Part shown: piece after piece, positions 1-57,853 of the stretch
Numbering within the stretch: position 1 is the first letter of the stretch
How the letters are laid out: every line of letters starts with the position of its first letter
From: Podarcis erhardii
Taxonomy: Eukaryota
Length of the DNA stretch: 64,000 nucleotides
Reading direction: 5' to 3' (one strand)
Assembly (NCBI GenBank): GCA_964252035.1
Contig: OZ176207.1
Position numbers and translations under genes: made by a program
The notes under the pieces: generated by a model
The model's input: the letters and a program-made list of their open reading frames with translations, nothing else
Database searches by the model: none
Told to the model about the DNA's origin: nothing

Positions 1-1457
1 AAGTTTGCTAATGCCTATCTTTCTGTTTTGCAGGAAAGGATGGAGTTTTGTATTGTTCCAGAGGTGCATCACTGTTTGTTATCTGTGCCTTATTTGTTAG
101 AAAAAGGGTTTCAGGTTTGTTTCCAGGATGATGTCTGCACAATCTCCAAAGGGGAGAGGGTACTTGCCAAGGTTAAGAAGGGGCAGAATGATCTTTTCAT
201 TCTTAAAACGTCTCTTGGGGGTGAGGGGAAGGTTGAGAGAGCACAGGCGCAGCGTGCTACAGTTCCCGCTCATGTTACTTGTGCTTGTGTATGGCATCAG
301 AGGACTTTTCATGGTTCTCTAGAAGAACTGCAAGTGCTTCCTGAGGTTACCAGAGGGTGTAAAATTAGAGATTGTGGACGTGCCATTAGTTGTGACACAT
401 GCAAGCAGGCAAAGGTGAGAGGGTGCAGTTACCCAAAGGTGGAACGGGTAACCACTAAACCTTTTCAGCTGGTACACATAGATCTGTTCAATCCTGTCAG
501 GGAACAGAGTCTAGGGGGGGGGGCAGGTATCTGCTAACGTTTCAGGATGATTTTTCGCAGAACACCTGGACTCATGGTCTCAAATCCAGGGAGGATGCAG
601 CACAGCTGATCAGGAGCTGGATTGAGGGGGTGGAACTAAGGTTCTCCACCAAGGTGAAAGCAATCGTCAGTGACAGAAATGCTAGGTACACTGGTTCTGC
701 TTTGCAGCAGTTCTTTCACAAAAGAGGGATAAGTTACACGGTTACTTCACCCAGTAAGAGGGGGGTGGCAGAGCTGAGGAGTGAAGCTCTGGTTAAGGCT
801 GCACAGGTAATGCTAACGGAAGCTAGGTTACCTCCAAAGTTTTGGCTGGAGGCAGTCCGATGTGTGTCTTTCACCTGGAATCGTGTCTACAACTCGCTGG
901 TAGGTGACACACCGTACTCTTTGTTGAATGGCAGAAAACCCCAGGTTCACTTTCTGCGCAAGTTTGGATCTCCTGCGGTTGTCCCTGTGCCTAAGGCTTT
1001 GCAAGGGCTAGATGGAGCCAAAGTCCAGAAAATGATCTTCTGTGGGTATGAGCCAGACGCTCGTGCTTGGAGGTTTGCTTACCCGTCAGGTGATCAGAGT
1101 AAGGTGCTGATCAGTAAACACGCTGAGTTCTTTGAGCAGGATGAAAGGCCAAAGATTTCTGCACAGCGTGATGTTCTTTCAGAATGTCTCTCTGATCCAG
1201 AGGACAGTTCTGTTGAGGAGGAAGGAGAGGCTGAGTCTGCTGATGACGACCAGGCCACAGGTGCGTGGGTAAGTTTCGCACAGTGCGATTCTGAGAGTTG
1301 TGAGGTGATTCCACAGATGCCTAACAGGTACTCCAAGGGAGGGCGCAAGGCATTGGGGAAGGAATTGATCTCACAGGGTGTTACTGAAGATGTTACACAG
1401 GTCTTGTCAGAAAGCAACGCAAGGGGGTGTGTGAGAGTTCAGAACTTAACTGGTTAA
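1..1457 (+). CDS. Copia pol fragment (end of protease region plus integrase), split by one frameshift in a G10 run at 514-523
   Basis: Frame 1 is open from base 1 to 537. After the G-run the sequence reads GRYLLTFQDDFSQNTW... in frame with ORF 630-1457. The putative DDE residues are retained (HIDL, VSD, VAE). Confidence 0.85.
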
Positions 1458-1854: not shown

Positions 1855-3725
1855 AAAAATACATCCCCCCCTTTCGATACTCTTTCTTTCATTCCCTTGT
1901 TTCCTCGACCTCCTCTCACCTCCCTTTTTGTATTCCACTTCTACTAGTTATTTCAGCAAATCCTTTCCATCTTTCTCTATTCTCTATCATATTATAAATA
2001 ACATATTTTTTAACCTTATTTTAACATTAAAACTAAAATACTTATATATACTTAACTCCTTATAACATTTCTGCTAAATCCATAAAATATCAATCCACCA
2101 TTTTTCTATCACTCATTAATTTTGCGATATTTCTATATATAAACTTTAAATTTTCCAATCCTCTTCCATCAACTCCTCTCCCTGGCTTCGGATTCTGCCA
2201 GTCCTTTCCGTCAATTCCATATAGTCCATCAACCTGGAGATCTTATGTCCGAGGCTCTTGACACTTTTCCAGGTCCCTTCTGCAGATTTTCTTCATATTC
2301 TTTGATGCTAGAGAGCAAATCTCGAGAAAACTCCATCCTAACAATATTCAAGATTCCTCCAAATCCAAAGGCCCCCAAAACTTCAATCTCCTCCAAATCC
2401 AAGTCCATGTCCCAAAAGTCAATTAATGCCTGGATAGAGGGATCTTTCCAACTTTCCTTCTTCAGTCCAAGCCGGGATCCAATCCTCAAAGTCTGACTTT
2501 TTCTAGATTCAGTCATAAAAGGCCTCAATTTATAGTCCTCAATTTGCTTCTGTAAAACTAAGGATCCCGCTTGCGTTCTTTTAGGTTCAAAAACAACAAC
2601 TTTCTCCTTTTCCTCCACCATTTCTTCTGCCAAAGTAGGTTCCTGTGCCAGGTCCTGAATTATTTCTGTGTTGGTACTCGCTTTTTGTCTCAAATTAGTC
2701 ACTTTCTGTTCCAAATTATCAATTTTAAAAGTCATGTCATCCGTCATGTCATCCATCTTTTTATGAAACTCTTCCAGCGAATGGCTTATCTTACATAATG
2801 CAGTCACAATAACTTCTCCTATCAACATTTTGAATGGTCCAAGGTCAATCTCTGGTTCTCAGAATCCTTATCTTGCAGCTGGAGATCTCCCAGTTACACT
2901 CCTATAACAGTTTCAAAAGCTCCCTCTAGAGGGAAACAGTCTCCACTTGTATCAGTTCTTTCAAGCACAACTCAAGCAATAAACATAGTTTCGATTTTCA
3001 GTTACTTTTCCTCCATTTTAAATGCAGAAGAGGACAATGGAAACAGTATCTTACTCTTATTTTAACTAGCTGTCAAATCCGTTCTGTCAATGAACTTTCC
3101 CCAAACGTCATCTGGCAGCCCGTTCCCAGGTTCAGAGCTGTGGTAATTTGATTTTCCCCTCACTCCTGCAGGCTTACTAAGTTCAAATTTCCCCCCCTCT
3201 TCACCTGCTTCCAAGGGGGGTTTTGTATTTTTAACCGATGGAGATTTAATCCTTTGTCAAAAGCTTTCAAAGACTTTAGCTTGTAACGTCTTTGCTTCAG
3301 TCTATTTACAAAAGCGGAAGGCGGACTTCCTGTCTATGACCTTCCCACTTCGGCGCCAAATTAAGGTATTTAAAGATCCAATTTTCCGTTCTACTCACGG
3401 GTAGTTGTTTAAGATCCAATTGTCCACAGGAAAAAGTCAGCGCTCTCCAGCAACAGCAATGCGGCTTCACTCCGTGAAAGAAACAGTCGATTCAAAGCAC
3501 CGCGCCACTCATCCCACGTCGCTCCGGATCCCCAAAACAGGGTTTCCCTGCGAGTAGGGGAGGCGCAAAAGGTGCCAGCCGAATCCCAGATTCACAAGCT
3601 TCTCCCGCTTGTGATGTCAATGGGTCTCCGCCTTTGCCGTGGCGGTCAGACCCTGTTTTTCACGGAGTAAGTTCCTCCCGATCGGAGGAGCTCAGCCATT
3701 GCCGGAGGTGCCAACCCGGAAGTAG
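1855..3725 (-). mobile_element. L1-derived short non-autonomous retroelement (HAL1-like); extreme 3' end displaced by the copia insertion
   Basis: The 5' end ACTTCCGGGTT matches the element at 41042. A GC-rich 5' UTR precedes a single 199-aa ORF. The following sequence encodes MDYMELTERTGRIRSQGEELMEEDWK, homologous to the ORF2 C-terminus of the L1 at 49070-49200, and then an L1-like 3' UTR. Confidence 0.8.
2229..2828 (-). CDS. Element-encoded 199-aa protein; coiled-coil-like N-terminus resembling L1 ORF1p, C-terminus ASDIRSPG
   Basis: The ORF is intact. It has a heptad-like segment (FHKKMDDMTDDMTFKIDNLEQKVTNL), and its C-terminal similarity to ORF 41853-42428 is visible by eye. Confidence 0.6.
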   Translation of the reverse strand: MLIGEVIVTALCKISHSLEEFHKKMDDMTDDMTFKIDNLEQKVTNLRQKASTNTEIIQDLAQEPTLAEEMVEEKEKVVVFEPKRTQAGSLVLQKQIEDYKLRPFMTESRKSQTLRIGSRLGLKKESWKDPSIQALIDFWDMDLDLEEIEVLGAFGFGGILNIVRMEFSRDLLSSIKEYEENLQKGPGKVSRASDIRSPG

Positions 3726-32742: not shown

Positions 32743-33315
32743 TAAGAACACAACAAATTGTACTTGGGCTCATTCAGACTTTCTCTTGTGCTGCATTTCT
32801 AGGCACAGGTGTGTGTTTTAAAGCTCCGTGTCCAAGCAGCCAAGCACTTTTTTTCTTGCCCCGGTGTTTTGCCCATGATACCCTACTCTTTACCTGTTCT
32901 GATTCATCGTTAAAGGGCAGGTTTTCCTGGATAAAGTGGTGGAGCAAAAAAAATGAAAAAAAGCAACTGCTAGAGGGTAATCCAGTCATTATAGCATTCT
33001 AGCAGTATCCTAAGAGGGAAAAATATTTGGTGTTGCCCAGGAGGAGCCACCTTTCTTAGAAACAGACTCCAGTCACTTCAGGTAAACTCAAACAGGAATA
33101 ATTTTATTTAAGTATAGTCTTATTTCCTCCTCAGACTCCAAGCCCACACTGACTTCCTCCCCTCCCCTCTACAGGAAGTTCCTTCTTCAGATATTTCCCC
33201 TTGACCCAAGAACTAACTATATACATGAAATGAGCATCCCCACCCAAACCATATACAATATAAAAGGTTTTGGTAGATATGGCTTTTAGCTTTCATAAGT
33301 TTTACTACATAATAA

Positions 33316-39925: not shown

Positions 39926-41044
39926 AACACAACATTTTAAAATCAATTCATATTTAAAATCAATTCAATGTAAGTACACACCCTTTAGCTCAAATCTACT
40001 TCTAACATTTTCATTTAGGCAACCCATCTGGGCACATAGATGTTCATGTGGTTTAAACACTTTTTAGTCCACAGTTATTTTAGTTATCTTTACTATGTTT
40101 TTAATTATTTGCTTTTAGCTTTTTAATTGATAATGTTAATATTAAAATTGCTTAGATATTTTATTCCAAGCAAGCAGTATATAAATGTTGCTGTTAAATA
40201 AATAACACATTTTGGTCTTTTTGATGATTTTTATAGAATTGAACTTCATTGGTTCATTATTATTTTTAAAAATTACCCGTGTGCAGCTCTTCAGAATTAA
40301 GCAGATGTTTTCTTCTCAAATTCGGAAAAAGAAAGAAGGCATTCTTCTGTTGCATAAGTCTCTGAATTAGTGAAATTACACGCATGAAAACGGCATGCTT
40401 TCAGGGAAGAAAATAACATTCTGAAATAACGTTGACAGGAATACGCCTGTAGGTCTACACCAAGAATGGGAGAAGCTACATGGTGGTTAACTTCCATTAG
40501 ATTTTTCATCTTTATATTCTCAGTTGCTGATTACAGTGCCAGGAGCAGAGTTTCTTTAATTTGGTATTTTGTTCTCTCTTCCACTCCCATTAACAGGCTC
40601 TTAGAAGCTCTATCCTGGAATGAAGAGTTATGAGGTAAGTTCATGGCATATAGCAAGTGAAGCTTCCCTTCTACTAGAAACAAAGTGGTTTGGAAAGCTT
40701 AACCTGCTGGCCTCCTGCCTGTTTTTCACCTGCTCAAGGCACAGACATCCTTTCAGGAAAAATAAAGATTTGGCAACTCCGGTTGTTATGTTGTCCTTGG
40801 GGACTATGGAGTAAATGCAGCAAATTACAATCTTTTGAACAGGTCCATGGTTAAGGACCTGCCATCACTAACCTTTACTTCCAGCACTAAGAAGAGTTCG
40901 TTCACCGAACGACTAAATAAAATATCCACAGTTGATTATGGACTCATTATAATGAATCATCTGAGATTTTTCTGCATGGCACAAGAGTGCCACCATTTAT
41001 CCCTGACACCAGGAGCATACACTTTTGAAAGCAGAGAATAGGAG

Positions 41045-41076
41045 ACTTCCGGGTTAGCGCGAACGGCTAATGGCGG
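41045..41076 (+). promoter_or_regulatory. Putative internal Pol II promoter motifs at the element 5' end (ETS site ACTTCCGG; YY1-like ATGGCGG)
   Basis: The motifs are at 41045-41052 and 41070-41076. The ETS motif also marks the 5' end of the other copy (CCGGAAGT, 3716-3723). Function is inferred. Confidence 0.45.
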
Positions 41077-41852
41077 ATTCCCTCCGAGCTCCGGAGGGAA
41101 TCGGCTCTGCTGAGGACGGGTCTTGCCGTGCCGGCGACACGGGGACCCTCAGAAACCGCAGGCGCGGAAGCCTGCGGACTTGGTGACTCGGTGGGCACCT
41201 TAAGCGCCCTCCCCGACCCACGAAGAGCCTTTTTAAAGGCTGCGGAGAGGGTACGGAGAGTGGCGTGGTGCTGAGAGTAGACCGCTACCTCAGTAGAGCG
41301 AAGCCGCAAGCCATGGCCGGAGAGCGCTGACTTTCTTCCCAAAATTTGGACTGGATAAAAAAGGACCCGTGAGTAGTGGAATTTGGACTTTAAAAATTTT
41401 ATCCTGTGAATTCGGCACGATCGGGGGATGTGTTAAAGGGAAGTCCGCACCCCCTCTACTTATAGACGTTTTAAAGCAAGGAACGGAGAATTAAGGCGGA
41501 ATGAATACTGTTTTGATGATTTAAAAGTTTCTCACAAATTTGATAGAACAAGATTTTTGTGCTGGAGAGAAAGGGAATTTGGAACTTTGTGTGTATCCCC
41601 CCCAAAAAACCCGGGAGTGTCATATTTGGGTCCCGGAGGAAGAAGTGAAAGGAGTTTGACAGCTGTCAAAGAAGCTGTCAAACGGGCGGATAAAGTAAAG
41701 AATTTTGCTATTTAATAACTCTTGGAATTAAAGCTGATACATTTGGACTGAGGCGATTGGAAACAAAGTATTGATAATAATAAAGTAATAGATTATTGGA
41801 AAAGGACTATTAAATAACTGAAAGCCCCCTAGGGGGAATTAGCGACATTACA

Positions 41853-42428
41853 ATGGCTGCAGAGGGAAAATTACTGGCGGAGATAGAAAAAATGTTCTTT
41901 CTCGTGGGAATCCTGCAGGAGCAGAGTATGGCTCTGAGTAAAGTTTTTATGACCTTGAATCCTGAAACAAACAACTCTGCTGAATGCACAAAGGAGATGT
42001 ATGATAAAAATTCTGCAGCTGAGCAGGAAGAGATGCCTTTGGAATTGACAGAGAAAAAAGAAGGAGTTCAGACACTACAAGTGGAAAACTTCAACCAGGA
42101 ATCTGCAGCGTTAGAGTATGAGCAAGAAGACTTCTGGACTACAGACCTGCGAAAGATGAGAAAGAAGAAGAGAGAAGCCCCTGGAGTACTTGGAATATTA
42201 AAACTAGAAAGAACAAAGCAATATGATTGGGACTTTTCTCTTGAGTATGGAAAACTAGATGGCCTTTCGCAGCAAACACTCTTCAACATTCTGAATGAAA
42301 GAAAATATGATCTGACTCTGACTGAACTCCTTCGGGGTCTTAGGACCATCAAAGAGGACTACCAATATAGCTGGCAGAGAGGGACTGACAGAGAATCAGA
42401 CGCCTCGGACGTGAGGAATCCGGGCTAG
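41853..42428 (+). CDS. Element-encoded 191-aa protein, C-terminus ASDVRNPG
   Basis: The ORF is intact and ATG-initiated inside the TSD-bounded element. Its C-terminus is similar to that of ORF 2229-2828. Confidence 0.6.
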   Translation: MAAEGKLLAEIEKMFFLVGILQEQSMALSKVFMTLNPETNNSAECTKEMYDKNSAAEQEEMPLELTEKKEGVQTLQVENFNQESAALEYEQEDFWTTDLRKMRKKKREAPGVLGILKLERTKQYDWDFSLEYGKLDGLSQQTLFNILNERKYDLTLTELLRGLRTIKEDYQYSWQRGTDRESDASDVRNPG

Positions 42429-43631
42429 AAATATTTTTTGTTTGTTTTCTGGACATGTGTCTAGGAAGGGACAGAAACCGGGGCAGGGGGGGGAGAGAAT
42501 AGAATTATAAAATGTTATGTTTTGTTTTACTTGGTCAATGTGACCTATAATTAATATAATAAAGGGAAAATTTGTGAAGGGGAAGTTAGATCGACCTTAA
42601 AAAAAAAAGAAATTAATGATTATAAGAGAATTGGATAGTTGAATATAGATAAACAAAAGAATTTAATTTTTAAAAGCAATGTGAATATCTTTAAGAGGTT
42701 AGACAAGAACTTGCTGAATTAATTGTGGAATTGGGATGTAAGAGGAGGGGGTGGGGGGAAGTCAACGAAAGTGGGTAAAGAAACTTAGGGTATGTAATTG
42801 TATTTGTGTGTTTGTCTGTCTTTGTCTTTGTGTGTGTGTCTGTTGTTATAAAATGTAAAAACCCAATAAAAATTATTTAAAAAAAAAAAAAAATGAAAGC
42901 AGAGAATAGATGGATTAAAAACCCGTAACGATAAGCAGCTCATAATCACTTTAAAGCTTTAGCTAAGCTTCAGCGCCTCAGGCTGCTGCCTCTATGGTTG
43001 CTCTTGTAAGCAGACTTAGTTATTGCTAAGGTTGATCTTCATGCAATATAATATTTTGTTGATGGTGAAATATGATTATTTCCCTTAGCTACACTATCAA
43101 CTCTGGTACATAAACTCTCACTTAGACTCCTACAAGTTTGAGAACAAAAAGTCCAGTGCCAGAAAAGCTAACCCATAACCTGCAGCCACAGCTCTCCTCA
43201 AGACCATTTGTGGACCATTTTTAAATATGTAGGAAAAACTACAAAAGCAATGTTCTGCACTGGGGTGGTCAATATTTCGAGGCCAGCGAACACATTCTAG
43301 TCACAGAATGGCTGCTATGAGGTCCTGGAGTTATAGCTGCCACATCTAAAAGAGCAGGAAAAATGACAAGGCCATGAAAAGATGCAGGGAAATCTCCCCA
43401 TAAGTCCACTCCACCAATTCAGGGAAGGCACAGTCACTCATAGAGAATAAGTTATTTGTTCAGAACGAATGGTAGGGTGGGCATCCAGCACTGGCATCCA
43501 ATGAAAATTCGGCATATCAAAGTGAGTGTATTCAGTGTAGGACAGGCTGGGCCAGTGCAAGCAGGAAGTGAGCAGAAAGAGCAAACAGTCTCTCATGTAT
43601 TGTGGATTTTTGAGGGGATATTTGCCTAAAC

Positions 43632-48778: not shown

Positions 48779-50725
48779 TTTATTTTTTTTAAGTGATATT
48801 TATTAAAGTTTCCAATAAAAACATATAAACACAAACAACAATAAAAACATACACAAACAAAAAACCAAAAACAAGTATAATTTCAAACCTTATTTTCTTA
48901 AACCTAATTTCCCCGACCTCCTCACACCTCCCCCTTCTGTATTCTAATCTCATTTATCTTATCAGCAAATCTATTTCCCTATTTCCCATAGTTTTTGTTT
49001 ATTCTGTTCTTTTTCCTTAATCAACGCCCCTGAAAACCACTAATTTTTAAACCCATATCTTTCTAGCCCTCATTAATTTTATAGTGTTTATTAAGATAGT
49101 CTTTAAATTTCTTCCAATCTTCTTCCACTGTCTCTTTCTCCTGGTCTCGGATTCTGCCAGTCATCTCTGCCAGTCCCATGTAGTCTGTCATCTTCATCTG
49201 CCATTCTTCCAGGGTGGGTAGATCTGGTGTCTTCTAATACTTTGCAATAAGAATCCTTGCTGCTGTTGTAGCGTACATAAAAAAAGTTCTGTCCTTCTTT
49301 AACACCACATGGCTAAGCATACCCAGGAGAAAGGCCTCTGGTTTCTTCAAGAAGGTATATTTAAATACCTTTTTCATTTCATTATATATCATTTCCCAGA
49401 AAGCCTTAATCCTTGGGCATGTCCACCAGAGGTGAAAAAATGTACCTTCATTTTCTTTACATTTCCAACATTTATTATCTGATAAGTGGTAAATTTTTGC
49501 AAGCTTGACTGGGGTCATGTACCACCTATAGATCATTTTCATAATATTCTCTCTTAAGGCATTACATGCCGTGAATTTCATACCGGTGGTCCACAACCTT
49601 TCCCAGTCAGCGAACATAATGTTATGACCAATATCTTGTGCCCACTTAATCATAGCTGATTTAACTGTTTCATCCTGCGTATTCCATTTCAACAGCAAGT
49701 TATACATTTTTGACAGATTCTTAGTTTTGGGTTCTAGCAACTCTGTTCCCAGTTTTGATTTTTCCACCTGAACGCCAATTTTTCTGTCCAACTTATAGAC
49801 CTCCAGTATTTGATAATAGTGAAGCCAGTCTCGCACTTTATCTTTTAGATTCTCAAAACTCTGCAATTTCCACTTATTACCCTCCTGTTCTAAAATTTCG
49901 CAATATTTTGGCCATTTAGACTCCATATTAAGTTTTTTCAAAGCTTTTGCCTCCATTGGTGACAGCCACCTTGGAGTTTTATTCTCCAACAAATCTTTAT
50001 ATTTAATCCAGACATTATACAATGCTTTCCTGACAATATGGTTTTTAAAGCCTTTATGAGCCTTAACCTTGTCGTACCACAAATATGCATGCCACCCAAA
50101 AAAGTTATTAAAACCTTCCAAATCTAAAATGTCCGTGTTCTCGAGAGGCAGCCAGTCTTTTAACCAGCAAAAAGCTGCTGATTCATAATAAAGTCTATTT
50201 AAAGACAATTATGAGAAATGTTGGAAACAAGTGAAAAAAGATCTAGAAATTTGGTCAAATTTGAAGCTTTCCTTGTCTGGTCGAATAGCAGTTATAAAGA
50301 TGAATGTATTGCCTAGAATGTTGTTTCTGTTCCAAACACTGCAAATTGTGGACAAGATGGAATGTTTCAAGGGTTGGCAGCAATACATTTCTAAATTCAT
50401 CTGGCAGGGCAAATCCCCCTCTTTCCTTTGCATCAGTTAAAATCTTAAATTTTATTCTGGGCTTTTTGCCCTGCCAGATGAATTTAGAAATGTATTGCTG
50501 CCAACCCTTGAAACATTCCATCTTGTCCACAATTTGCAGTGTTTGGAACAGAAACAACATTCTAGGCAATACATTCATCTTTATAACTGCTATTCGACCA
50601 GACAAGGAAAGCTTCAAATTTGACCAAATTTCTAGATCTTTTTTCACTTGTTTCCAACATTTCTCATAATTGTCTTTAAATAGATTCATATTTTTAGCTG
50701 TCATATTGATCCCCAACTTGGGGAT
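48779..50725 (-). mobile_element. 5'-truncated, internally rearranged L1/Tx1-clade LINE
   Basis: It has an 18-bp TSD CAATATTGCTTTCATCTA (48761-48778, 50726-50743) and an A-rich tail. The ORF2 C-terminal region includes SLSGRIAVIKMNVLPR and the CCHC knuckle CWKC...H...C. Confidence 0.93.
49070..50720 (-). pseudogene. L1 ORF2 C-terminal fragment, interrupted by an inverted duplication and a premature TAG (49234-49236, in place of Trp)
   Basis: ORFs 50255-50740 and 49234-50208 join as ...RGGFALPD / RLYYESAAF... The frame continues past the TAG (KTPDLPTLEEWQMKMTDY). Confidence 0.85.
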
Positions 50726-53519
50726 CAATATTGCTTTCATCTAAGCTGTTGCATGTTAATCCTGAATCAGGAAGCTTTGATACTGTGACCAATTTTTGTG
50801 CTGCAAACTGCCCTGTGATCTTTGGATGAAGGGCAGTATATAAGTTTATTAAATAATAATAATAATGATGATGATGATGACACAACCAATTTACCAGGTG
50901 GGAGCCAGATTATGGGCTGGCATGAATGTGGCCATGGCTGAGCGGGTGAGGGGAGTCAGATGAAAACCTCCTTGGGAGATCTAGTGGGACATTTCTGTAT
51001 CTTTCAGGGATGGGCAGGTCTCAGGCAGGAACAGGACAGCAGCCCCCTTTCAATGGACTGGCTGGTTACGCCACTGGGCTTTCCCTCACCTTGTGGTCAC
51101 CAGCCAGATTCCTGTTGCATGGCATGCACCATGCTGGGTCCTTCTACATTGGGCAACTTCCATAGCATTCCCAAGCAGGCATTTTGGAAAAGGGTGTCAG
51201 ATTTCAGATCAGAAGCTTATGGATCCAGAACCAATGTCATGTCAACCACTACTTACTGTGATCAATAAAAACATCTCAGCCTCCCAGGACTCTCTTTGAC
51301 TGACCTTAAAGTTGCCATCCTTGAAAAAAAAGAACTTCAGCGGAAATCATCAACATTTAAATGTTGAAAATTCAATTCAAGCTTATGGCTTGAATCAAGA
51401 CAAATTTTCTTTGTTTATTAAATTTATTTATTTGATTTTTCAACTTAACATTTTACAGAGATATATCAAACACAGATAATAAAAACAAGATTCGAACGAA
51501 TCTCCTAGACTTCCATCCTCCCCTATGTGGGTCCTATTATTAATCAGCAAGACAAATGTTTTATTTATCACACTGCAAGTATTAATTAGAATACCAATTT
51601 AAGGATGTCTATGCTAACATTTGGGAGAGGGCAATATTTCTCTCTCTCTCTCTCTCTCTCTCAAACTAAGAAGTGGCTGAGTGATGTATTTTCTTGCTTG
51701 TACATTTGCTTTAAACACCAACAGCTTCACATCAGCCAGATTAGTTTTCTCAGTGTTTGTTTGTGCAGGGAAAGTATATCCTCCAATAGGCACCACAAGG
51801 TGAGGCTGTCCTTAATGCTACCTGCCCTTAATGCTGTCCTTAGTGTTTCATTTTCTATCTGCAGTAATCAATGAGAGAATAAAATTCTTAAGAGAGAATG
51901 CTGTGTCTTGTGGGGGAGATTCAGAATTTGAAGTCTTTATTCATTTGGGGTGTACATAATTTTATTTAAATTGGCATGGATTCATTTTATATTATTTGTT
52001 CCATTTTATTTTAGTTTAATGTTTAATGTTTAATTTTAATATTTGTTAAAATATTAAATAGTGATGTTTCCTTTTTGAAGAGGCATGTTGAGATTCCCCA
52101 GGGAAATACAGCATATTAAGTTTGTTTATATTCTCGTTTATTTGGATCCGAGTTAAATTCTAGTTCTGCTAGCTTGTCTTACTTTCATATTGTTAAACTT
52201 TGTTTTGTAATCATCTGGTGAAATGAATCTAATGCTGCCTGCAGAATGCTAAAGAACTCTGGGCGATTTCTTCCCCAAACCAAGAAGTAAGATATATATA
52301 CATAAGTTAAATGAAGCTTTTAACTTTTCTTTTTGAAAAAAATCTCTCTGCTGCTTTTTGAAAAAAATCCAGGGCTTGTTAGTGCTCCACAGGCAGCATT
52401 TAGACAACCTTATATCTTGCAAAGCCCATGGACCTAAAGTGGAGAAACATAAAGACATAGAAATATAGAGTACAGAAAAGTAGGAAGTAGAGAAAAGAGT
52501 GACAAATAAATGTGAGGCTTTGCAGCAGCCCTGATCTAACTTGGGTCACTTTGTTCGTCTCAGTTTTCAATTCAGAAAGTGGTAAAACCACGCTTATCCA
52601 CCCAATTCACCTAATTATTCAGTGCCAGCACAGATTAGTTCCACATACTTATTGCTTACTTTGTTTTGTAGTGACTTCAGCTTGGGGTGAAATAGACTGA
52701 ATCCCTGCCTTACAATCCAAAGACTTCAGGTCTAAGACTAGCTATGACATCTAGCCCTATGTCACTTCTTCTATGTCTCACAGGGTGGGTATAAGGAAGT
52801 GACAAGAGTGCAATTAACCTGCATGTCTATTAAAACCAGCTAAAGAGGTTTCAGGTGCTTTAGATGAAGCTCTCAGAAACTGTATATTCCTACTATAAAA
52901 TTCCATGCACAAATCTGTGTGTGTGGATAATAAACATCCCCCACAATATACAATGTACACAAACATAAAGTGAGTTAAAATATCTCGTAGTCAGTAGCAC
53001 TGGAATATCTATTCATATCAGAAGGTCAGGGAGTGATTGCATATTGATTTAAATGGAATTTAAATGCATCCATCTTACAGATATGATTTACCATAAGTTT
53101 GGAAAGGACTAGTGCAAGGATATTGAACCTCTCGCTCTAAACATTATGTCATGTTGTTGGGAAACTCTGGCAAAAATTAGAGTGTGTTATAAATGCCTTA
53201 AGTGGATTTCTAAAACCCATCTCTTTAGAGCCAGTGCAAAATAAAGTTAACGTATTGCATACTGTCTATTATAGGAGAAAAAGGGCTTCCGGAATTTAAT
53301 AGAGATTGCATTCAGTGCACAAAGTGCTATCTGAGCATGGGAACAGTGCCCATATAACCTTCCCTAACCTGGAGTCATCCTGATGTTTTGGACTCCCACA
53401 TTTCCTGACTGTTGGCCAGGGGCTGATAGGAGTTGGAGCATAAAAGAACTGCACAGCACCAGTTAGGAAAGGCCGCTATAGCAGTTTACAGTGCCTTGTA
53501 GCCCTAAGATAGGGTTGGT

Positions 53520-54340
53520 GGTAGGGTGTCCCAAATTTTCCTTCCAAAATGTTGGGGTGCTTGTAAAGGACAGAAGTTAGGAGCACAGCTGGGCTATCAG
53601 CCTAAGCTGATGGAAAGCAATCCCTGACATGGAGGCCACCTGAGCCTGAAGCGACAGCAAAGGTTCTAGAAGTACCCCTGAGCTACGTACCCACTCCTTC
53701 AGAGGGAGTGTAACCCCATCAAGAGCAGACCACCTCCCATCAATTTGATCTAGGGAACCACACACTAACAGTGCCTCAGTCTAATCTGGATTGAGCTGCA
53801 GTTTGTTGACTCTCATCCAGCCCATTACTGAGGCAAGCTAATGGTCCAGCACATCCACTGCCATACCTGAAGATGTAAAGGATATTGCTAACAATGTACT
53901 ACCAAATGCCAGATAACCCAACACAGCGGTTTCATGTAGTTGTTAAACAGCATAAGGGATAAAATTGAACCCCAAGGAACCCCACATTGAAGACTTTGGG
54001 GCCGAAGAGCACTCCTCAAGCACCACCTTCTGGAAACAACCATCCAAGTAGGACCAGAACTGCCGCAAAGTGGTGTGACCATCTCCAACTCGGACAACTG
54101 CTCCAGAAGGATGGCATGGTTGATGATATCAAAAGCTACCGAGAAGTCGAAGATAATGAACAGGGACATATTTCCCCTCTTTCCCTTCCAATGGAGGTCA
54201 TCATACAGGGTGACCAAAGCAGTTTCTGTGCCAAAACTGGGCCAAAACCCCGTTTGAAATGGATCTAGAAAAATCTGTTTACTCCAAGAGCACCTGGATC
54301 TCATCCATGACCACCCGCTCAAGAACCATGCCCCAGAAGG
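53520..54340 (-). mobile_element. Degraded L2-clade LINE reverse-transcriptase fragment
   Basis: The translation contains FLDPFQTGF..FGTETALV.L.DDL, DFSVAFDII.HAILL and GVPWGSILSLMLFN.YMKPL. Confidence 0.85.
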
Positions 54341-54624
54341 AGAGATTGACATTGACAACTGGCTGGTAGTTACTTAACAAATACAGGGAGGGTTTCTTGA
54401 GGAGTGGTTTTACAACTGTTTGCTTCAAGTAGGCAGGGATCACCCCCTCACAAAGAGGTATTAATCATTTCCCTGGACCAGCCAGCTACCCCCCTGCTAG
54501 TTTTTATCACCCAAGAGGAGCAGGGGTCCAGAGCTAGAGTCAATCAGGATTCCAAGGCCAGGTTGAAAAGGGCAGCAAGGCAGGAAGCAGGTCCTCTAGG
54601 ACTCAAAGCCAAGATGGGGCCTAC

Positions 54625-54850
54625 TTCATTTCATTTATTGAATTTATATACCGCCCTATATCTGGAGGTCTCAGGGCAGTTCACAAAAAAAGAGATCACA
54701 ATATATAAAATCAAAATAAAAACAACAATCCAATAGCACACACACCCCAAGAAAGAGCCACATTTTAAAGGGTATAGGATGTTGATTAGATCAGTCAAAG
54801 GCTTGGTTAAAAAGGAACATTTTTTCCTGGTGCCTAAAGGTGTATAATGT
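54625..54850 (-). mobile_element. L2-like 3' end
   Basis: The tail motif TTTATATACCGCCC...CTCAGGGCAGTTCAC is followed by a sequence typical of L2 3' ends. Confidence 0.55.
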
Positions 54851-55261
54851 ATACTTCAGAGTAGACAGTAGGGACGGTAGAGAGCTCTAACTGAAATGAG
54901 AGAAAAAAATGCCGATGTTTGTTATTTGACCTATTTCCAGAATTGTAATGAATTCACCTGGCTACGCAAGGGTTAAAATGGGTAGGGAGCAGAGGCATGC
55001 ACACAAGTCCCATCCATAGCATACCTGTATGCAGGAGCTTCTCTCAGACCTTCATGCTGAATGAAGCTTCTCTGCATGGTCTCTACACACTTGGGGACCA
55101 TACAATTCCCAAACACTTGGGGACTTTTAAGTGTATTCAGTTGAATATGCACAGAAGCTCCATGCAGACCTCTTCACACAGTGTGTGAAGGTTTGAACGG
55201 AACCTTTCCATGCAGGTACATTGGAGATAGGGCATGTAAGGGCACCAGCATCTCTCTACAC

Positions 55262-55397
55262 CAGGCTTCCTCATCCTTGGTCCTCCAGAAGTTTTGAGAC
55301 CACAATTCCCATAATCCCTGACCACTGGTCCTGCTAGCTAGGGATCATGGGAGTTGTAGGCCAAAAACATCTAGAGTGCCAAGGCTGAGGAAGCCTG
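55262..55397. mobile_element. hAT-type MITE
   Basis: TIRs are CAGGCTTCCTCA / TGAGGAAGCCTG, with a perfect 8-bp TSD CTCTACAC. Confidence 0.9.
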
Positions 55398-57853
55398 CTC
55401 TACACACTTTTAATGCATTTCCGGGCAGAATGAAGAGAAGCTTCTATAGAGTTAGGCTCTTTGTATATTTCTTCATCAGTGAAGTCTGGTGGAAATGATA
55501 GCATTATTTGACCTTTACTTCCAGCATAACCTAGAATACATATTGCTTTATCAATTAGAAGTAAGTGCAGGGCTGTGCAAAAATGGCCTCTCGAAAAATT
55601 GCCATCCTATTTCCAGGCAGGGAAATTACATGGAGAGACATTTGATTATTGCATACCTGGAATATAGCTTACTGTGAAAAAGTAGGTGGTCCATCCATTG
55701 CTCTACCCACTTTTACTTCTAGTCCTGCCTTCAACTGGCATGCAACGCTCCCACAAAAATTGCCCACTTGGAAATGCAACTCTCAGGCTGAAAATGACTC
55801 TACATCCTTTGTTTATAGAATTGCAGCCTAAAAGATTCAAGCTAGGGATAGCTTTGCTTCCTTCTTTCTTTGTATTAGACATGGCTACTTTTCTGTGTCT
55901 GTGTTCCTAACAAATGATGAAAGTTAAAGTATTTATTCCAGATGAAAGTTCTGGAAGAAGTGGATTTCTCTGTCAGAAATTGCTTCAGATCTGCAAGATT
56001 CATTTTGGAACCAGTGCAATAAAATAGCTCAAGCACTCAACAGCTTTTTAACAAAGTGGGGAAGGATTTGCCTGGCAGTTTATGAATTACTGCACAGGCA
56101 GCCTAAGGAAAAAAATGTCATTCTTCTTTTAAAAGAAACAACAGTGACTAATCTGGGCAAATGGGCTTCACAGGTGAAATATGTTGATTTAATGATGAGG
56201 CAAATGAAGCAAAAGTCACCACCCTAAACTGGCTGATTACAGTTAATGTTACATGGCCAATTATGAAGTGAACAATAGCAAATCTAGTGAAGAATAGATT
56301 TGTTTTGTTTTTCTGAGAAAGGGCAGGAAAAGGGGCAAGCTTAAAAACGCCCCACATTTTTAAAAAATGAAAAAGGATGTTGTGAATATAAAATAAGACA
56401 CTAATTGAAGTATAATTTTCTGAGTCAGTGTGGATATTTCTTGTCAGGTGCACTTAAAAATGTCTTGGAGGTAAGCTGCTGATGCAGTGTACAAGGAAGT
56501 CTAAATATAAAATTGTCATGCTATCATTTTGCTAATGGGAAGCACTGAATAATTCAACTCCAGTAATAATAAGGCAAAATCTATCTTGTATCTGTATCTT
56601 ATGAGCCAGGATGTTAATTTACTTTGAGCATTTGAGATGAGATTATTATTATTTTCTTTTGCTCTGAAAGATTAAAAAAACCAGCACTTTTGTGTCATTC
56701 ATTCATTAGGGTAGGATGAGTAATAGTGAGATGCTGTAGGAGCAAAATGGAACTGACTCCCTCTCCACATCCCATAACCTGGAAAGAACTGAAGGCTGTG
56801 GAGGAGGAGCTTACTATAGGATTCAGCTAGTGATGGGAGAGAAATTCACTACCTATATTGCACTTACCAAAACAAGACACAGACCAAAACATAGGAATCC
56901 TTCAAAATTCATGTTTTTGTGAACTTTGCAATGTTGTCCTCCAACAAAAAAATATACCCAAAAATATATATCATATTTTAGGGAAAGTGTGCATGGAAAT
57001 GCATATATTAGTGACAATAACATAATAAATTCCATTGTGTTAAAGGAAATTGCTTGCAACATGCAAGTACTGGGATAAATGCACACTGATGAATTTTCAT
57101 GATCACATTTAGAAATGAATCAAAAAGTGTTGTAGAGATGTAGCAAGCTGGGCTTAAAACTAGAAAAATGAGAATTTGAGAGAACCTGAAATGGATAGGT
57201 TCATCCATTCCTAACTCCATGAAAAGTAAAGTGTAATTATGAAAGTTCATTAACCACACACAAAATGACCCCTTACAAAAGTTCATTTTTGCTTTCCACT
57301 GTCCTTCCACTGAGCATCTGCCGGCTTATCATTTTTGTTCCACACCAAACCTGGAAATGTCTTTTGGCACTTGACAGAGATGTTCCAATAGTCAGTTTCC
57401 TTTGAGAGACCTGCCAGTTAAACTTTACTGTGAACATCAGAGCTTGCATGGAATATGCAAGGTGGTTTAATATGTGTGTGTGTATGTTTGCCTAGGCAAA
57501 TTGTGATGCATCCTGTTTGAGGCTTCTGCAGAAAGTTGAACCAATTACTGGCTGATGGATGGATGTACTGAACTTGTTAGTCACTGGTAACACAAAACAG
57601 TCACCAAGCAACTCACAACAGATTTAAATGCATATGCGTCTTTCTTTTTTAAAGATGTTATTATATGAAATGCATTTTCACAAAACATGTTTACACAAAA
57701 ACACACCTAATTCGTAAAAAAAAATGCACAAAGCCACCACCAGTAACAATAGTGGAAAGCTTGGACAACATAATTAACAGCACAATGTCATCAAGTATTA
57801 CTTGATGCCAAAAAGATGTCAGTGAATGCACTAGGTGACTCTTACTGGGTGTA

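Follow-up and report, generated by a model that had tools for sequence, protein, structure and literature searches.

Two RT-less elements with a shared layout

The 64-kb window (the whole stretch of DNA analysed here) contains two related elements of about 1.85 kb, whose coordinates and anatomy, as given in the initial annotation, agreed with those that we re-derived. The first is a complete RT-less retroelement on the plus strand (41042-42894). It begins with a GC-rich 5' module (41042-41390) that is common to both copies, and its leader of 811 nt is followed by an intact ORF encoding 191 aa (41853-42428, stop included; start codon context ACAATGG). A degenerate remnant of an L1 ORF2 tail (42429-42515) abuts the stop of this ORF, and the element closes with an L1-type 3'UTR (42516-42894) carrying a G-rich box (approximately 42744-42764), a T/G-rich tract, an AATAAA signal (42865-42870) and a tail of 16 A residues (42879-42894). 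Endonuclease and RT are absent, and no sense ORF of at least 60 aa was found in this copy besides the 191-aa one. The insertion of the plus copy bears the marks of target-primed reverse transcription by L1: a poly-A follows AATAAA, and the element is flanked by a perfect 16-bp target-site duplication (tgaaagcagagaatag, at 41026-41041 and again at 42895-42910).

The second element, a divergent copy that we call subtype B, lies on the minus strand (1855-3725). It has the 5' module (3365-3725), a leader of 897 nt and an intact ORF of 199 aa that ends in ASDIRSPG-stop (2229-2828), followed by what is left of the final ~42 codons of L1 ORF2 (2100-2228), which abuts the small-ORF stop in a different frame, and by an L1-type 3'UTR (1855-2099). 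Note that this 3'UTR ends before the T/G tract and the poly-A: another element cuts the 3' end at approximately position 1855, past which the sequence is foreign, and neither a tail nor a target-site duplication is visible. As occurs in the plus copy, endonuclease and RT are absent, and besides the 199-aa ORF there are no sense ORFs of at least 60 aa.

The 3' part derives from L1

The elements had initially been described as RT-less and L1-derived, with an L1-like 3' region. This region is real, as judged by the identity of both copies to an L1 present in the window, and it consists of an ORF2-tail remnant followed by an L1-type 3'UTR. The comparator, which lies outside the family, is a decayed L1 3' end on the minus strand (48790-50208) comprising the C-terminal 324 aa of ORF2, with a premature stop at 49234 and a natural end near 49055, and then the 3'UTR; its ORF matches residues 1050-1163 of human L1 ORF2p (E 4e-10). 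Against the ORF2 end and 3'UTR of this L1, the minus copy showed 71-74% identity (E 2.5e-24), with 71% over 153 nt for the remnant and 73.5% over 83 nt for the 3'UTR. The remnant of the plus copy aligns both with the ORF2 end of the comparator and with the minus copy, and over 170 nt the plus-copy 3' region shares 60.6% identity with the comparator 3'UTR (E 3.5e-7), the boxes being in the same order.

The small ORF itself is not an alternate frame of the in-window L1, since an hhalign comparison of the family with the 324-aa ORF2 C-terminus gave a probability of 0.1%. When all members were searched with tblastn against the six frames of the window, only chance matches were obtained outside the two elements. 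The best of these (32913-33026) lies in no meaningful ORF.

The RT-less layout was also present in all 14 contigs fetched for the relatives of the ORF described below, and the junction between the ORF stop and the ORF2-tail remnant was identical in these 14 contigs and in both window copies. Several of the fetched contigs carry differing flanking DNA past the poly-A. The RT-less layout is found repeatedly in other samples, at unrelated loci.

The 5' module and the leader

In support of a common 5' end, which the initial annotation had proposed, the 11-base sequence ACTTCCGGGTT, with which both elements start, occurs exactly at two sites in the window only, one per element (41045-41055 in the plus copy and 3713-3723 in the minus copy); with one mismatch allowed there are 4 window matches, compared to 0.55 expected by chance. 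The 5' modules of the two copies are 67% identical over ~350 nt (E 1e-12), with a GC content of 0.62-0.66, and their consensus fold has an energy of -91 kcal/mol, versus -51 +/- 5 for column shuffles. RNAalifold also reported 12 compensatory pairs between the modules. We discounted these as structure evidence because a similar number arises in column-shuffled controls (11.3 +/- 2.8); the consensus energy alone stands out. We take ACTTCCGG to be an ETS-like start-site motif. To judge from these sequence features, the 5' module is probably a start-site or promoter region combined with a structured RNA leader, and we treat it as a putative one. No full-length L1 5' end is present within the 64-kb window.

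Further downstream, a palindrome or hairpin, CCCCCTAGGGGG (41825-41836), lies 28 nt upstream of the start codon of the plus copy. Most members of the family carry it ahead of their conserved ATG, in forms that differ by C:G to T:A exchanges. In both copies the leader holds 5 upstream ATGs, compared to 15-17 expected, and the longest upstream ORF does not exceed 38 codons. Translation of the ORF by scanning would predict such a scarcity of upstream ATGs.

The small ORF belongs to a protein family with a conserved C-terminal tail

A search of 1.84 billion representatives identified approximately 16 relatives of the small ORF in public assemblies, with lengths of 129-215 aa. These relatives are short and unnamed and come from sequencing-run assemblies (Logan) only, with no NCBI or UniRef entry. 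A search with the family profile in the same 1.84 billion representatives found no longer protein sharing it. Most members are net acidic.

The tail ASD[VIL][RI][NSD]PG-stop is present in 16 of the 18 aligned members, the exceptions being the two broken ones. It takes the form R-[NSD]-P-G-COOH in 15 of the 16 intact-tail members and ends in I-D-P-G in the remaining one, and the stop adjoins the Gly in every one of them. In the plus copy it reads ASDVRNPG (42402-42428, with the stop). The ending ASD(V/I)R(N/S)PG-stop had been noted initially for the two window ORFs, and the codons quoted for it are correct: the Arg, Pro, Gly and stop codons differ silently. The line-ups proposed upstream of the tail fared less uniformly. 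WD and ILN were recovered by BLASTP, which aligned the two window ORFs over their last 66 aa only (30% identity, E 8e-7), but IKE is offset, and in the family alignment WD is placed differently between the subtypes. The tail motif was found in no paper of the literature searched, and the same holds for HAL1-like or ORF1-only L1 derivatives in lizards.

The other conserved part of the protein is an amphipathic heptad helix at codons 7-35 (41871-41957 in the plus copy). Residues 7, 11, 15, 18, 21, 28, 32 and 35 are hydrophobic in at least 94% of the members, and Gly19 is invariant.

The ORF is under purifying selection

The initial annotation had suggested purifying selection on the ORF. Codon models bear this out, with an omega of 0.62 for the whole ORF (2dlnL 40.4) and lower values at both ends: 0.32 for the N-terminal 45 residues (2dlnL 43.0) and 0.375 for the last 30 residues (2dlnL 22.5). 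Over the middle 85 residues omega is close to neutral (0.81, not significant). Nei-Gojobori dN/dS ranged from 0.25 to 0.55 in pairs with dS <1. Within the last 8 codons, 13 of the 16 inferred changes are silent and 3 alter the residue, compared to 76% residue-altering changes across the ORF; third positions vary in 7 of these 8 codons, first positions in 2 and second positions in 1. Moreover, the ORF is open across subtypes in which synonymous sites are saturated. The ORF is under purifying selection that acts on the N-terminal heptad helix and on the C-terminal tail and is moderate in overall strength.

The protein has no recognisable ORF1p domain

The absence of a recognisable ORF1p RRM or CTD, noted initially, was confirmed by Pfam, by PDB profile searches and by an all-helical AlphaFold model. 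Pfam recognised no domain in any of the 18 members, and no Transposase_22 at E values up to 0.1; no chain of ORF1p was among the PDB profile matches, even at E values as high as 10. A truncated ORF1p therefore finds no support in these Pfam searches, which covered both window ORFs and all 18 members, or in the PDB profile searches. AlphaFold2, run with 9 sequences, predicted helices without strands (pLDDT 48, pTM 0.21), in which the N-terminal helix reached a pLDDT of 70-83. Foldseek found no match in PDB, as expected for a model of pLDDT 48, and two atlas searches returned only unrelated families, with scores of 0.80 or below. A three-copy complex prediction for residues 1-60 scored 0.02, a value that makes no call either way on oligomerisation. 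Since the protein is net acidic in most members and its fold is of low confidence, the sequence does not suggest an ORF1p-like RNA-binding role. A SINE was also considered and rejected: an Rfam scan of 40900-43000 at E values up to 1 gave one chance-level lncRNA match, and no tRNA, 7SL or 5S head was found.

A probable old, non-autonomous L1 derivative with its own protein

The elements have, in order, an L1-style 5' leader, a small ORF, an ORF2-tail stump, an L1 3'UTR and poly-A. We consider it likely that they belong to an old L1-derived family, non-autonomous and still recently active, whose layout is 'half-L1'-like. We read the family as a HAL1-like L1 parasite that, set against Pfam, NCBI, UniRef and the literature, appears to encode a new kind of protein.

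Another possibility could be that an unrecognised squamate L1 lineage has the small ORF as its ORF1, which would be either of a new type or a strongly reduced ORF1p in which the coiled coil alone is left; the RT-less copies would be ordinary internal-deletion derivatives of extant full-length elements. The N-terminal heptad helix does occupy the position of the ORF1p coiled coil, both the 5' and the 3' ends are L1-like, and homology to a parent ORF1p over some 35 residues would fall under the threshold of a profile search. Yet the ORF2-tail stump begins at the same junction in all 16 copies (2 in the window, 14 in contigs), which argues for one old deletion followed by a long independent life. 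Neither the lack of a longer protein with the family profile among the 1.84 billion representatives nor the lack of any Transposase_22 signal fits such a lineage, and we regard this origin as quite unlikely.

The ORF could also be a functionless passenger, its conservation resulting from constraint on the RNA or DNA combined with a search biased towards intact proteins. The DNA conservation of leader and 3'UTR roughly equals that of the ORF, so that the ORF is not the sole constrained part, and its middle is near neutral. Furthermore, the relatives were collected via intact predicted proteins, with 2 of the 18 aligned sequences broken, and the intactness of the ORF is thus partly an ascertainment effect. 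What makes a passenger very unlikely is that third positions in the tail vary (7 of 8), unlike what constraint on RNA or DNA would leave, that the omega values at the two ORF ends are highly significant, that the ORF has stayed open despite synonymous saturation between subtypes, and that upstream ATGs are scarce in both leaders.

Highly improbable, too, is that the NPG end acts as a 2A/StopGo-like or termination-stalling nascent peptide, which would retain the ribosome where the ORF ends beside the 3'UTR, or let it go there, instead of working within the finished protein. There is a resemblance between the ending D-V-R-N-P-G and the 2A motif D(V/I)ExNPG|P, a stop follows the Gly in every intact-tail member, and non-LTR retrotransposons are known to contain 2A-like peptides (PMC3708506). 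However, the motif D[VIL][RI][NSD]PG is one residue short of 2A, its Asn position can be N, S or D, and a stop takes the place of the Pro codon, with no ORF downstream. Finally, a retrogene family, in which the copies would be processed retrocopies of a host mRNA, is scarcely credible. The mRNA-like layout (leader, one ORF, 3'UTR, AATAAA and poly-A) and the target-site duplication would fit it, but the 3' part includes an ORF2 remnant followed by an L1 3'UTR, divergent subtypes share this layout at many loci, the protein libraries contain neither a host gene nor a longer homologue, and the protein is named in no source.

If the elements are non-autonomous L1 derivatives, as we favour, an internal promoter would start transcription at the ACTTCCGG motif, and L1 ORF2p provided in trans would prime on the poly-A and the L1-type 3'UTR. 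The protein, which is small, helical and mostly acidic, would act in cis on the RNA or RNP of its own element, which would explain why lineages that keep the protein propagate. The role that we prefer for it is that of a self- or hetero-oligomerising adaptor, not of an RRM-type RNA chaperone like ORF1p; the N-terminal helix may serve as the assembly surface and the R-x-P-G carboxyl end as a short docking or turnover motif. The loss of the enzyme, together with the retention, through deep divergence, of a small protein in which no ORF1p can be recognised, implies that the protein supplies something needed for copying by foreign machinery.

A bolder proposal from the same sequence features, which we consider unlikely, is that the protein represents a new class of retroelement accessory protein in which R-x-P-G is a functional short linear motif. 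The motif might be a degron that clears protein not bound in cis to its own RNP, enforcing cis-action, or it might by mimicry engage a Cullin-2 receptor of the host or proteins of the partner L1, and the N-terminal helix might dock on the L1 RNP.

Comparison with known systems

HAL1 elements depend on L1, and they are the closest point of comparison for the layout. HAL1 is a non-autonomous L1 derivative that encodes ORF1p only and arose several times in mammals (PMC5753468). Like HAL1, the lizard family has lost ORF2 and kept one ORF, and its elements have an L1-derived 3' end, no endonuclease or RT and, in the plus copy, an L1-type insertion, with a poly-A tail and a duplication that falls in the usual range of about 7-20 bp. 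It departs from HAL1 in the ORF, in which the Pfam, PDB and family-profile searches found no ORF1p: HAL1 encodes a recognisable ORF1p, whereas the lizard family encodes an acidic protein of ~190-215 aa that is predicted to be all-helical and has no detectable RRM or CTD. The hosts also differ, being mammals for HAL1 and a squamate for the lizard family with its invariant C-terminal motif. The same distinction applies to L1 ORF1p itself. Both are encoded by the ORF that comes first after a long leader, and both have an N-terminal heptad helix, but ORF1p is basic and has an RRM and a CTD, whereas the lizard protein is acidic, has neither domain and gave no profile or structural match.

HeT-A of Drosophila is a telomeric non-LTR element that encodes only the protein of the first ORF and relies on the RT of other elements. 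The lizard family is likewise a non-LTR retroelement without RT. However, HeT-A belongs to the Jockey clade and its Gag has zinc knuckles and targets telomeres, whereas the lizard family derives from L1, has no sequence similarity to HeT-A and shows nothing suggesting a host function.

As occurs in 2A/StopGo peptides, the ...D-V-x-N-P-G end of the lizard protein is strongly conserved at the protein level, but its spacing is one residue short, the Asn is variable, a stop replaces the Pro and no ORF follows. C-degrons offer a second parallel. KLHDC10 (CRL2) recognises -PG ends, the degron of APPBP2 (CRL2) is Rx[2-4]Gx[0-3] (PMC7458402), and an R-x-x-G placed at the very C-terminus is tolerated (PMC10614623). 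The R-x-P-G end fits both the CRL2-KLHDC10 and the CRL2-APPBP2 patterns; this is a pattern match only, to degrons defined in human cells.

Since no source names the protein, squamate gene sets may hold it as orphan ORFs or miss it. With 1.85 kb, one ORF and an 8-residue tail, the element would be a compact system for the cis requirements of non-autonomous elements, and it bears on the hijacking of the L1 RNP and on the use of protein-end motifs such as C-degrons by transposable elements. Known L1 parasites are either non-coding (Alu, SVA and processed pseudogenes) or carry a normal ORF1p (HAL1). If the accessory-protein proposal is true, the lizard family would represent a protein-based L1 parasitism, distinct both from the RNA parasitism of the Alu/SVA type and from the ORF1p-carrying HAL1.

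Two elements and their insertion

Our results showed that the insertion of the plus copy bears the hallmarks of L1 target-primed reverse transcription. This element (41042-42894, plus strand) is bounded by a perfect 16-bp target-site duplication (41026-41041 and 42895-42910) and terminates 3' in a 16-A tail after an AATAAA (42865-42870, plus strand), the duplication and poly-A reported in the initial annotation being both found at the element ends. The minus copy (1855-3725, minus strand) has neither tail nor duplication because it is cut at ~1855 by another element. An LTR-type element adjoins its 3' end near this position and apparently truncates it; a 275-aa ORF of that element (630-1457, plus strand) carries a retroviral-polymerase SH3-like domain (E 9.5e-13).

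Each copy carries a single sense ORF, of 191 aa in the plus copy (41853-42428, plus strand) and 199 aa in the minus copy (2229-2828, minus strand), after leaders of 811 and 897 nt, respectively. One intact ORF of 191-199 aa per element had been claimed, without endonuclease or RT, and both claims held, since 1.85 kb with one ORF leaves no space for either enzyme. The ACTTCCGGGTT motif starts three bases into the plus element, and its only further exact match in the window lies at the head of the minus element (3713-3723, minus strand). Likeness between the two DNAs is detectable only in the first ~350 nt (67% identity, E 1e-12) and parts of the 3' region, and the protein alignment is confined to the last 66 residues (30%, E 8e-7). 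By these alignments, the two copies are old relatives.

The elements are L1-derived

Directly 3' of its ORF stop, the minus copy is homologous to the ORF2 end and 3'UTR of an L1 in the window (48790-50208, minus strand), with 71% identity over 153 nt (E 2.5e-24) and a second match of 73.5% over 83 nt. The nucleotide match spans approximately the last 42 codons of ORF2, and 27 codons of the translation, in a frame different from that of the small ORF, still parallel '...DYMGLAEMTGRIRDQEKETVEEDWK...' of the L1. The comparator ORF matches residues 1050-1163 of human ORF2p (E 4e-10) and by this homology is a true L1 ORF2. Divergence from this L1 is greater in the plus copy (60.6% over 170 nt, E 3.5e-7), which keeps the same box order: tail remnant, A-rich body, G-rich box, T/G tract and AATAAA. 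Thus, the L1-like 3' region proposed for both copies was recovered. That the small ORF is an alternate reading frame of this L1 was ruled out by sequence comparison.

A decayed L1 spans 48790-56500 (minus strand); the C-terminal 324 aa of its ORF2 contain a premature stop at 49234, and an RVT_1 fragment (53891-54358) lies ~3.7 kb upstream of this part, farther than expected, so the decayed L1 is interrupted. Note that the G-rich box (GGGGGTGGGGGGAAGTC-like; 42744-42764, plus strand) is kept in the family 3'UTRs (contigs L002, L006, L011, L013 and L014), that a terminal CCAATAAAAATTAT is conserved there across the family, and that both occur in looser form in the L1 near 48900. Both are candidates for a role in 3' recognition or stability.

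A protein family with a shared layout

A word-index search gave seven full-length relatives (188-214 aa, 39-49% identity), all from Logan public-run assemblies and none with a name or Pfam domain. A nine-sequence profile, searched against 1.84 billion representative proteins (E up to 0.001), produced 12 matches, none of them an L1 ORF1p or a host protein: two were already in the profile, nine were new (all 129-215 aa), and the last, a repetitive protein of 2858 aa matched in 18 stretches, was taken as an artefact of low complexity or coiled coil.

Aligned together, the 18 sequences fall into subtype A (the plus copy and proteins P0001-P0009, with which the broken copy P0012 also groups) and subtype B (the minus copy, P0010, P0011, P0013, P0014, P0015 and the truncated P0017). 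The shared plan starts with Met-Ala-Ala-x-Gly-Lys and runs through a conserved amphipathic helix, a variable, acidic middle and a stretch around K-D-Y-Q-Q-N-R-R to the tail A-S-D-[VIL]-[RI]-[NSD]-P-G, followed at once by the stop in 16 of the 18. The conserved C-terminal motif seen in the two copies thus extends well beyond them, the exceptions being the frameshifted or truncated P0012 and P0017.

An ORF2-tail remnant lies immediately 3' of the small ORF in all 14 contigs encoding relatives (L001-L014), and in the longer ones the shared 3'UTR boxes follow, up to AATAAA and poly-A, beyond which the flanking DNA is unrelated. These flanks and the common layout identify them as independent genomic insertions of RT-less elements; that they are pieces of full-length L1s was ruled out by the junction and by the poly-A followed by unrelated flanks. 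Since the junction is identical in both subtypes, the layout suggests that a single ancient deletion was followed by long diversification.

No member had a convincing match to Transposase_22 or another Pfam family, and PDB profile searches found no ORF1p, in agreement with the lack of a recognisable RRM/CTD noted initially. The AlphaFold model consists of helices and disorder at low confidence (pLDDT 48; only residues 1-35 reach 70-83), and neither Foldseek nor the atlas searches gave a match. A 3-4 hydrophobic repeat runs through residues 7-35, with eight positions at least 94% conserved and an invariant Gly19 within the helix; modelling the first 60 residues as a trimer gave no answer either way. 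The net charge, acidic in most members (-2 to -14), speaks against a basic RNA chaperone of the ORF1p type.

Selection and the carboxyl end

Codon comparisons showed that the ORF is conserved, with selection at its two ends. Among relatives recovered through intact predicted proteins, pairwise Nei-Gojobori dN/dS fell at 0.25-0.55 in every pair whose dS was below 1; synonymous sites are saturated between subtypes A and B. A codon model fitted on 12 distinct sequences and compared with omega = 1 gave omega 0.62 for the whole ORF (2dlnL 40.4), 0.32 for the first 45 residues (43.0), 0.81 for the middle 85 (3.2, not significant), 0.62 for the last 61 (12.4) and 0.375 for the last 30 (22.5). The values for the whole ORF and for its two ends support the purifying selection proposed in the initial annotation. 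DNA-level conservation of the UTRs is about equal to that of the ORF.

By parsimony on the tree, the last eight codons underwent 16 codon changes, only three of which altered the residue, compared to 76% across the whole ORF (binomial estimate for three or fewer of 16 at a rate of 0.76, ~2e-6); third positions vary in seven of the eight codons, first positions in two and second in one. Because changes there are mostly silent and third positions vary, it is the protein sequence of the tail, rather than its RNA or DNA, that is conserved.

The R-x-P-G end matches, as a pattern, two published C-terminal degron classes, that of KLHDC10, which recognises -PG ends, and that of APPBP2, whose degron reads Rx[2-4]Gx[0-3] (PMC7458402), R-x-x-G being tolerated at the extreme C-end (PMC10614623). 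This match suggests two possibilities: protein unassembled in cis may be rapidly turned over, or the tail may engage a host receptor. The tail also resembles a 2A motif and could act as a StopGo-like peptide; however, this is unlikely, as it is one residue short of that motif, the Asn position varies, a stop rather than a Pro codon follows, and no translatable sequence lies 3' of it.

The 5' leader and a proposed mechanism

Both copies are GC-rich (0.55-0.66) over their first ~340 nt (41042-41390, plus strand; 3365-3725, minus strand), a stretch predicted to adopt a common, very stable multi-branch fold, in which ACUUCCGGGU, at the extreme 5' end, is base-paired to ACCCGUGAGU ~325 nt further 3'. 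The fold has a consensus energy of -91 versus -51 +/- 5 kcal/mol for shuffled columns, and its 12 compensatory pairs are not above the shuffled-column level. Each leader holds only five upstream ATGs, against 15-17 expected, all upstream ORFs are at most 38 codons, and the main start codon of the plus copy is flanked by A at -3 and G at +4, a context that, with the ATG-poor leaders, fits translation by scanning.

A palindrome, CC(C/T)(C/T)CTAG(A/G)(A/G)GG, occurs in the window only in the plus (41825-41836) and minus (2922-2933) copies, and also in L001, L005-L007 and L010-L014. It lies 12-20 nt 5' of the conserved start codon in most members (~90 nt in the minus copy), its arms are often lengthened to 7-9 bp, and pairing is preserved through C:G to T:A exchanges; a small RNA hairpin and a palindromic binding site are candidate roles for it. 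In L002, L003, L004, L005 and L008 the called ORFs start at an upstream in-frame ATG, and their first 36 nt encode 12 further residues, MAIPLGxTxDIT, ahead of the conserved Met-Ala-Ala, and the plus copy encodes nearly the same in-frame peptide at 41817-41852 without an ATG. Either the start site differs among lineages, or the palindrome is what is conserved.

We propose that an internal promoter would start transcription at the ACTTCCGG motif, that L1 ORF2p would mobilise the element in trans via the L1-type 3'UTR and poly-A, and that the small protein may work in cis as an assembly or docking adaptor.

Comparison with known elements

The closest known kind is HAL1, a non-autonomous L1 derivative encoding only ORF1p (PMC5753468). 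The lizard family shares the HAL1 architecture but departs from its defining feature, because the retained ORF is unrecognisable as ORF1p. We found no paper on such lizard elements or containing the tail motif, Repbase and Dfam lying outside this comparison. We file the family as HAL1-like with an ORF not recognisable as ORF1p, apparently undescribed in lizards in the literature compared. Functionally, it resembles Drosophila HeT-A, a first-ORF-only element that relies on a foreign RT.
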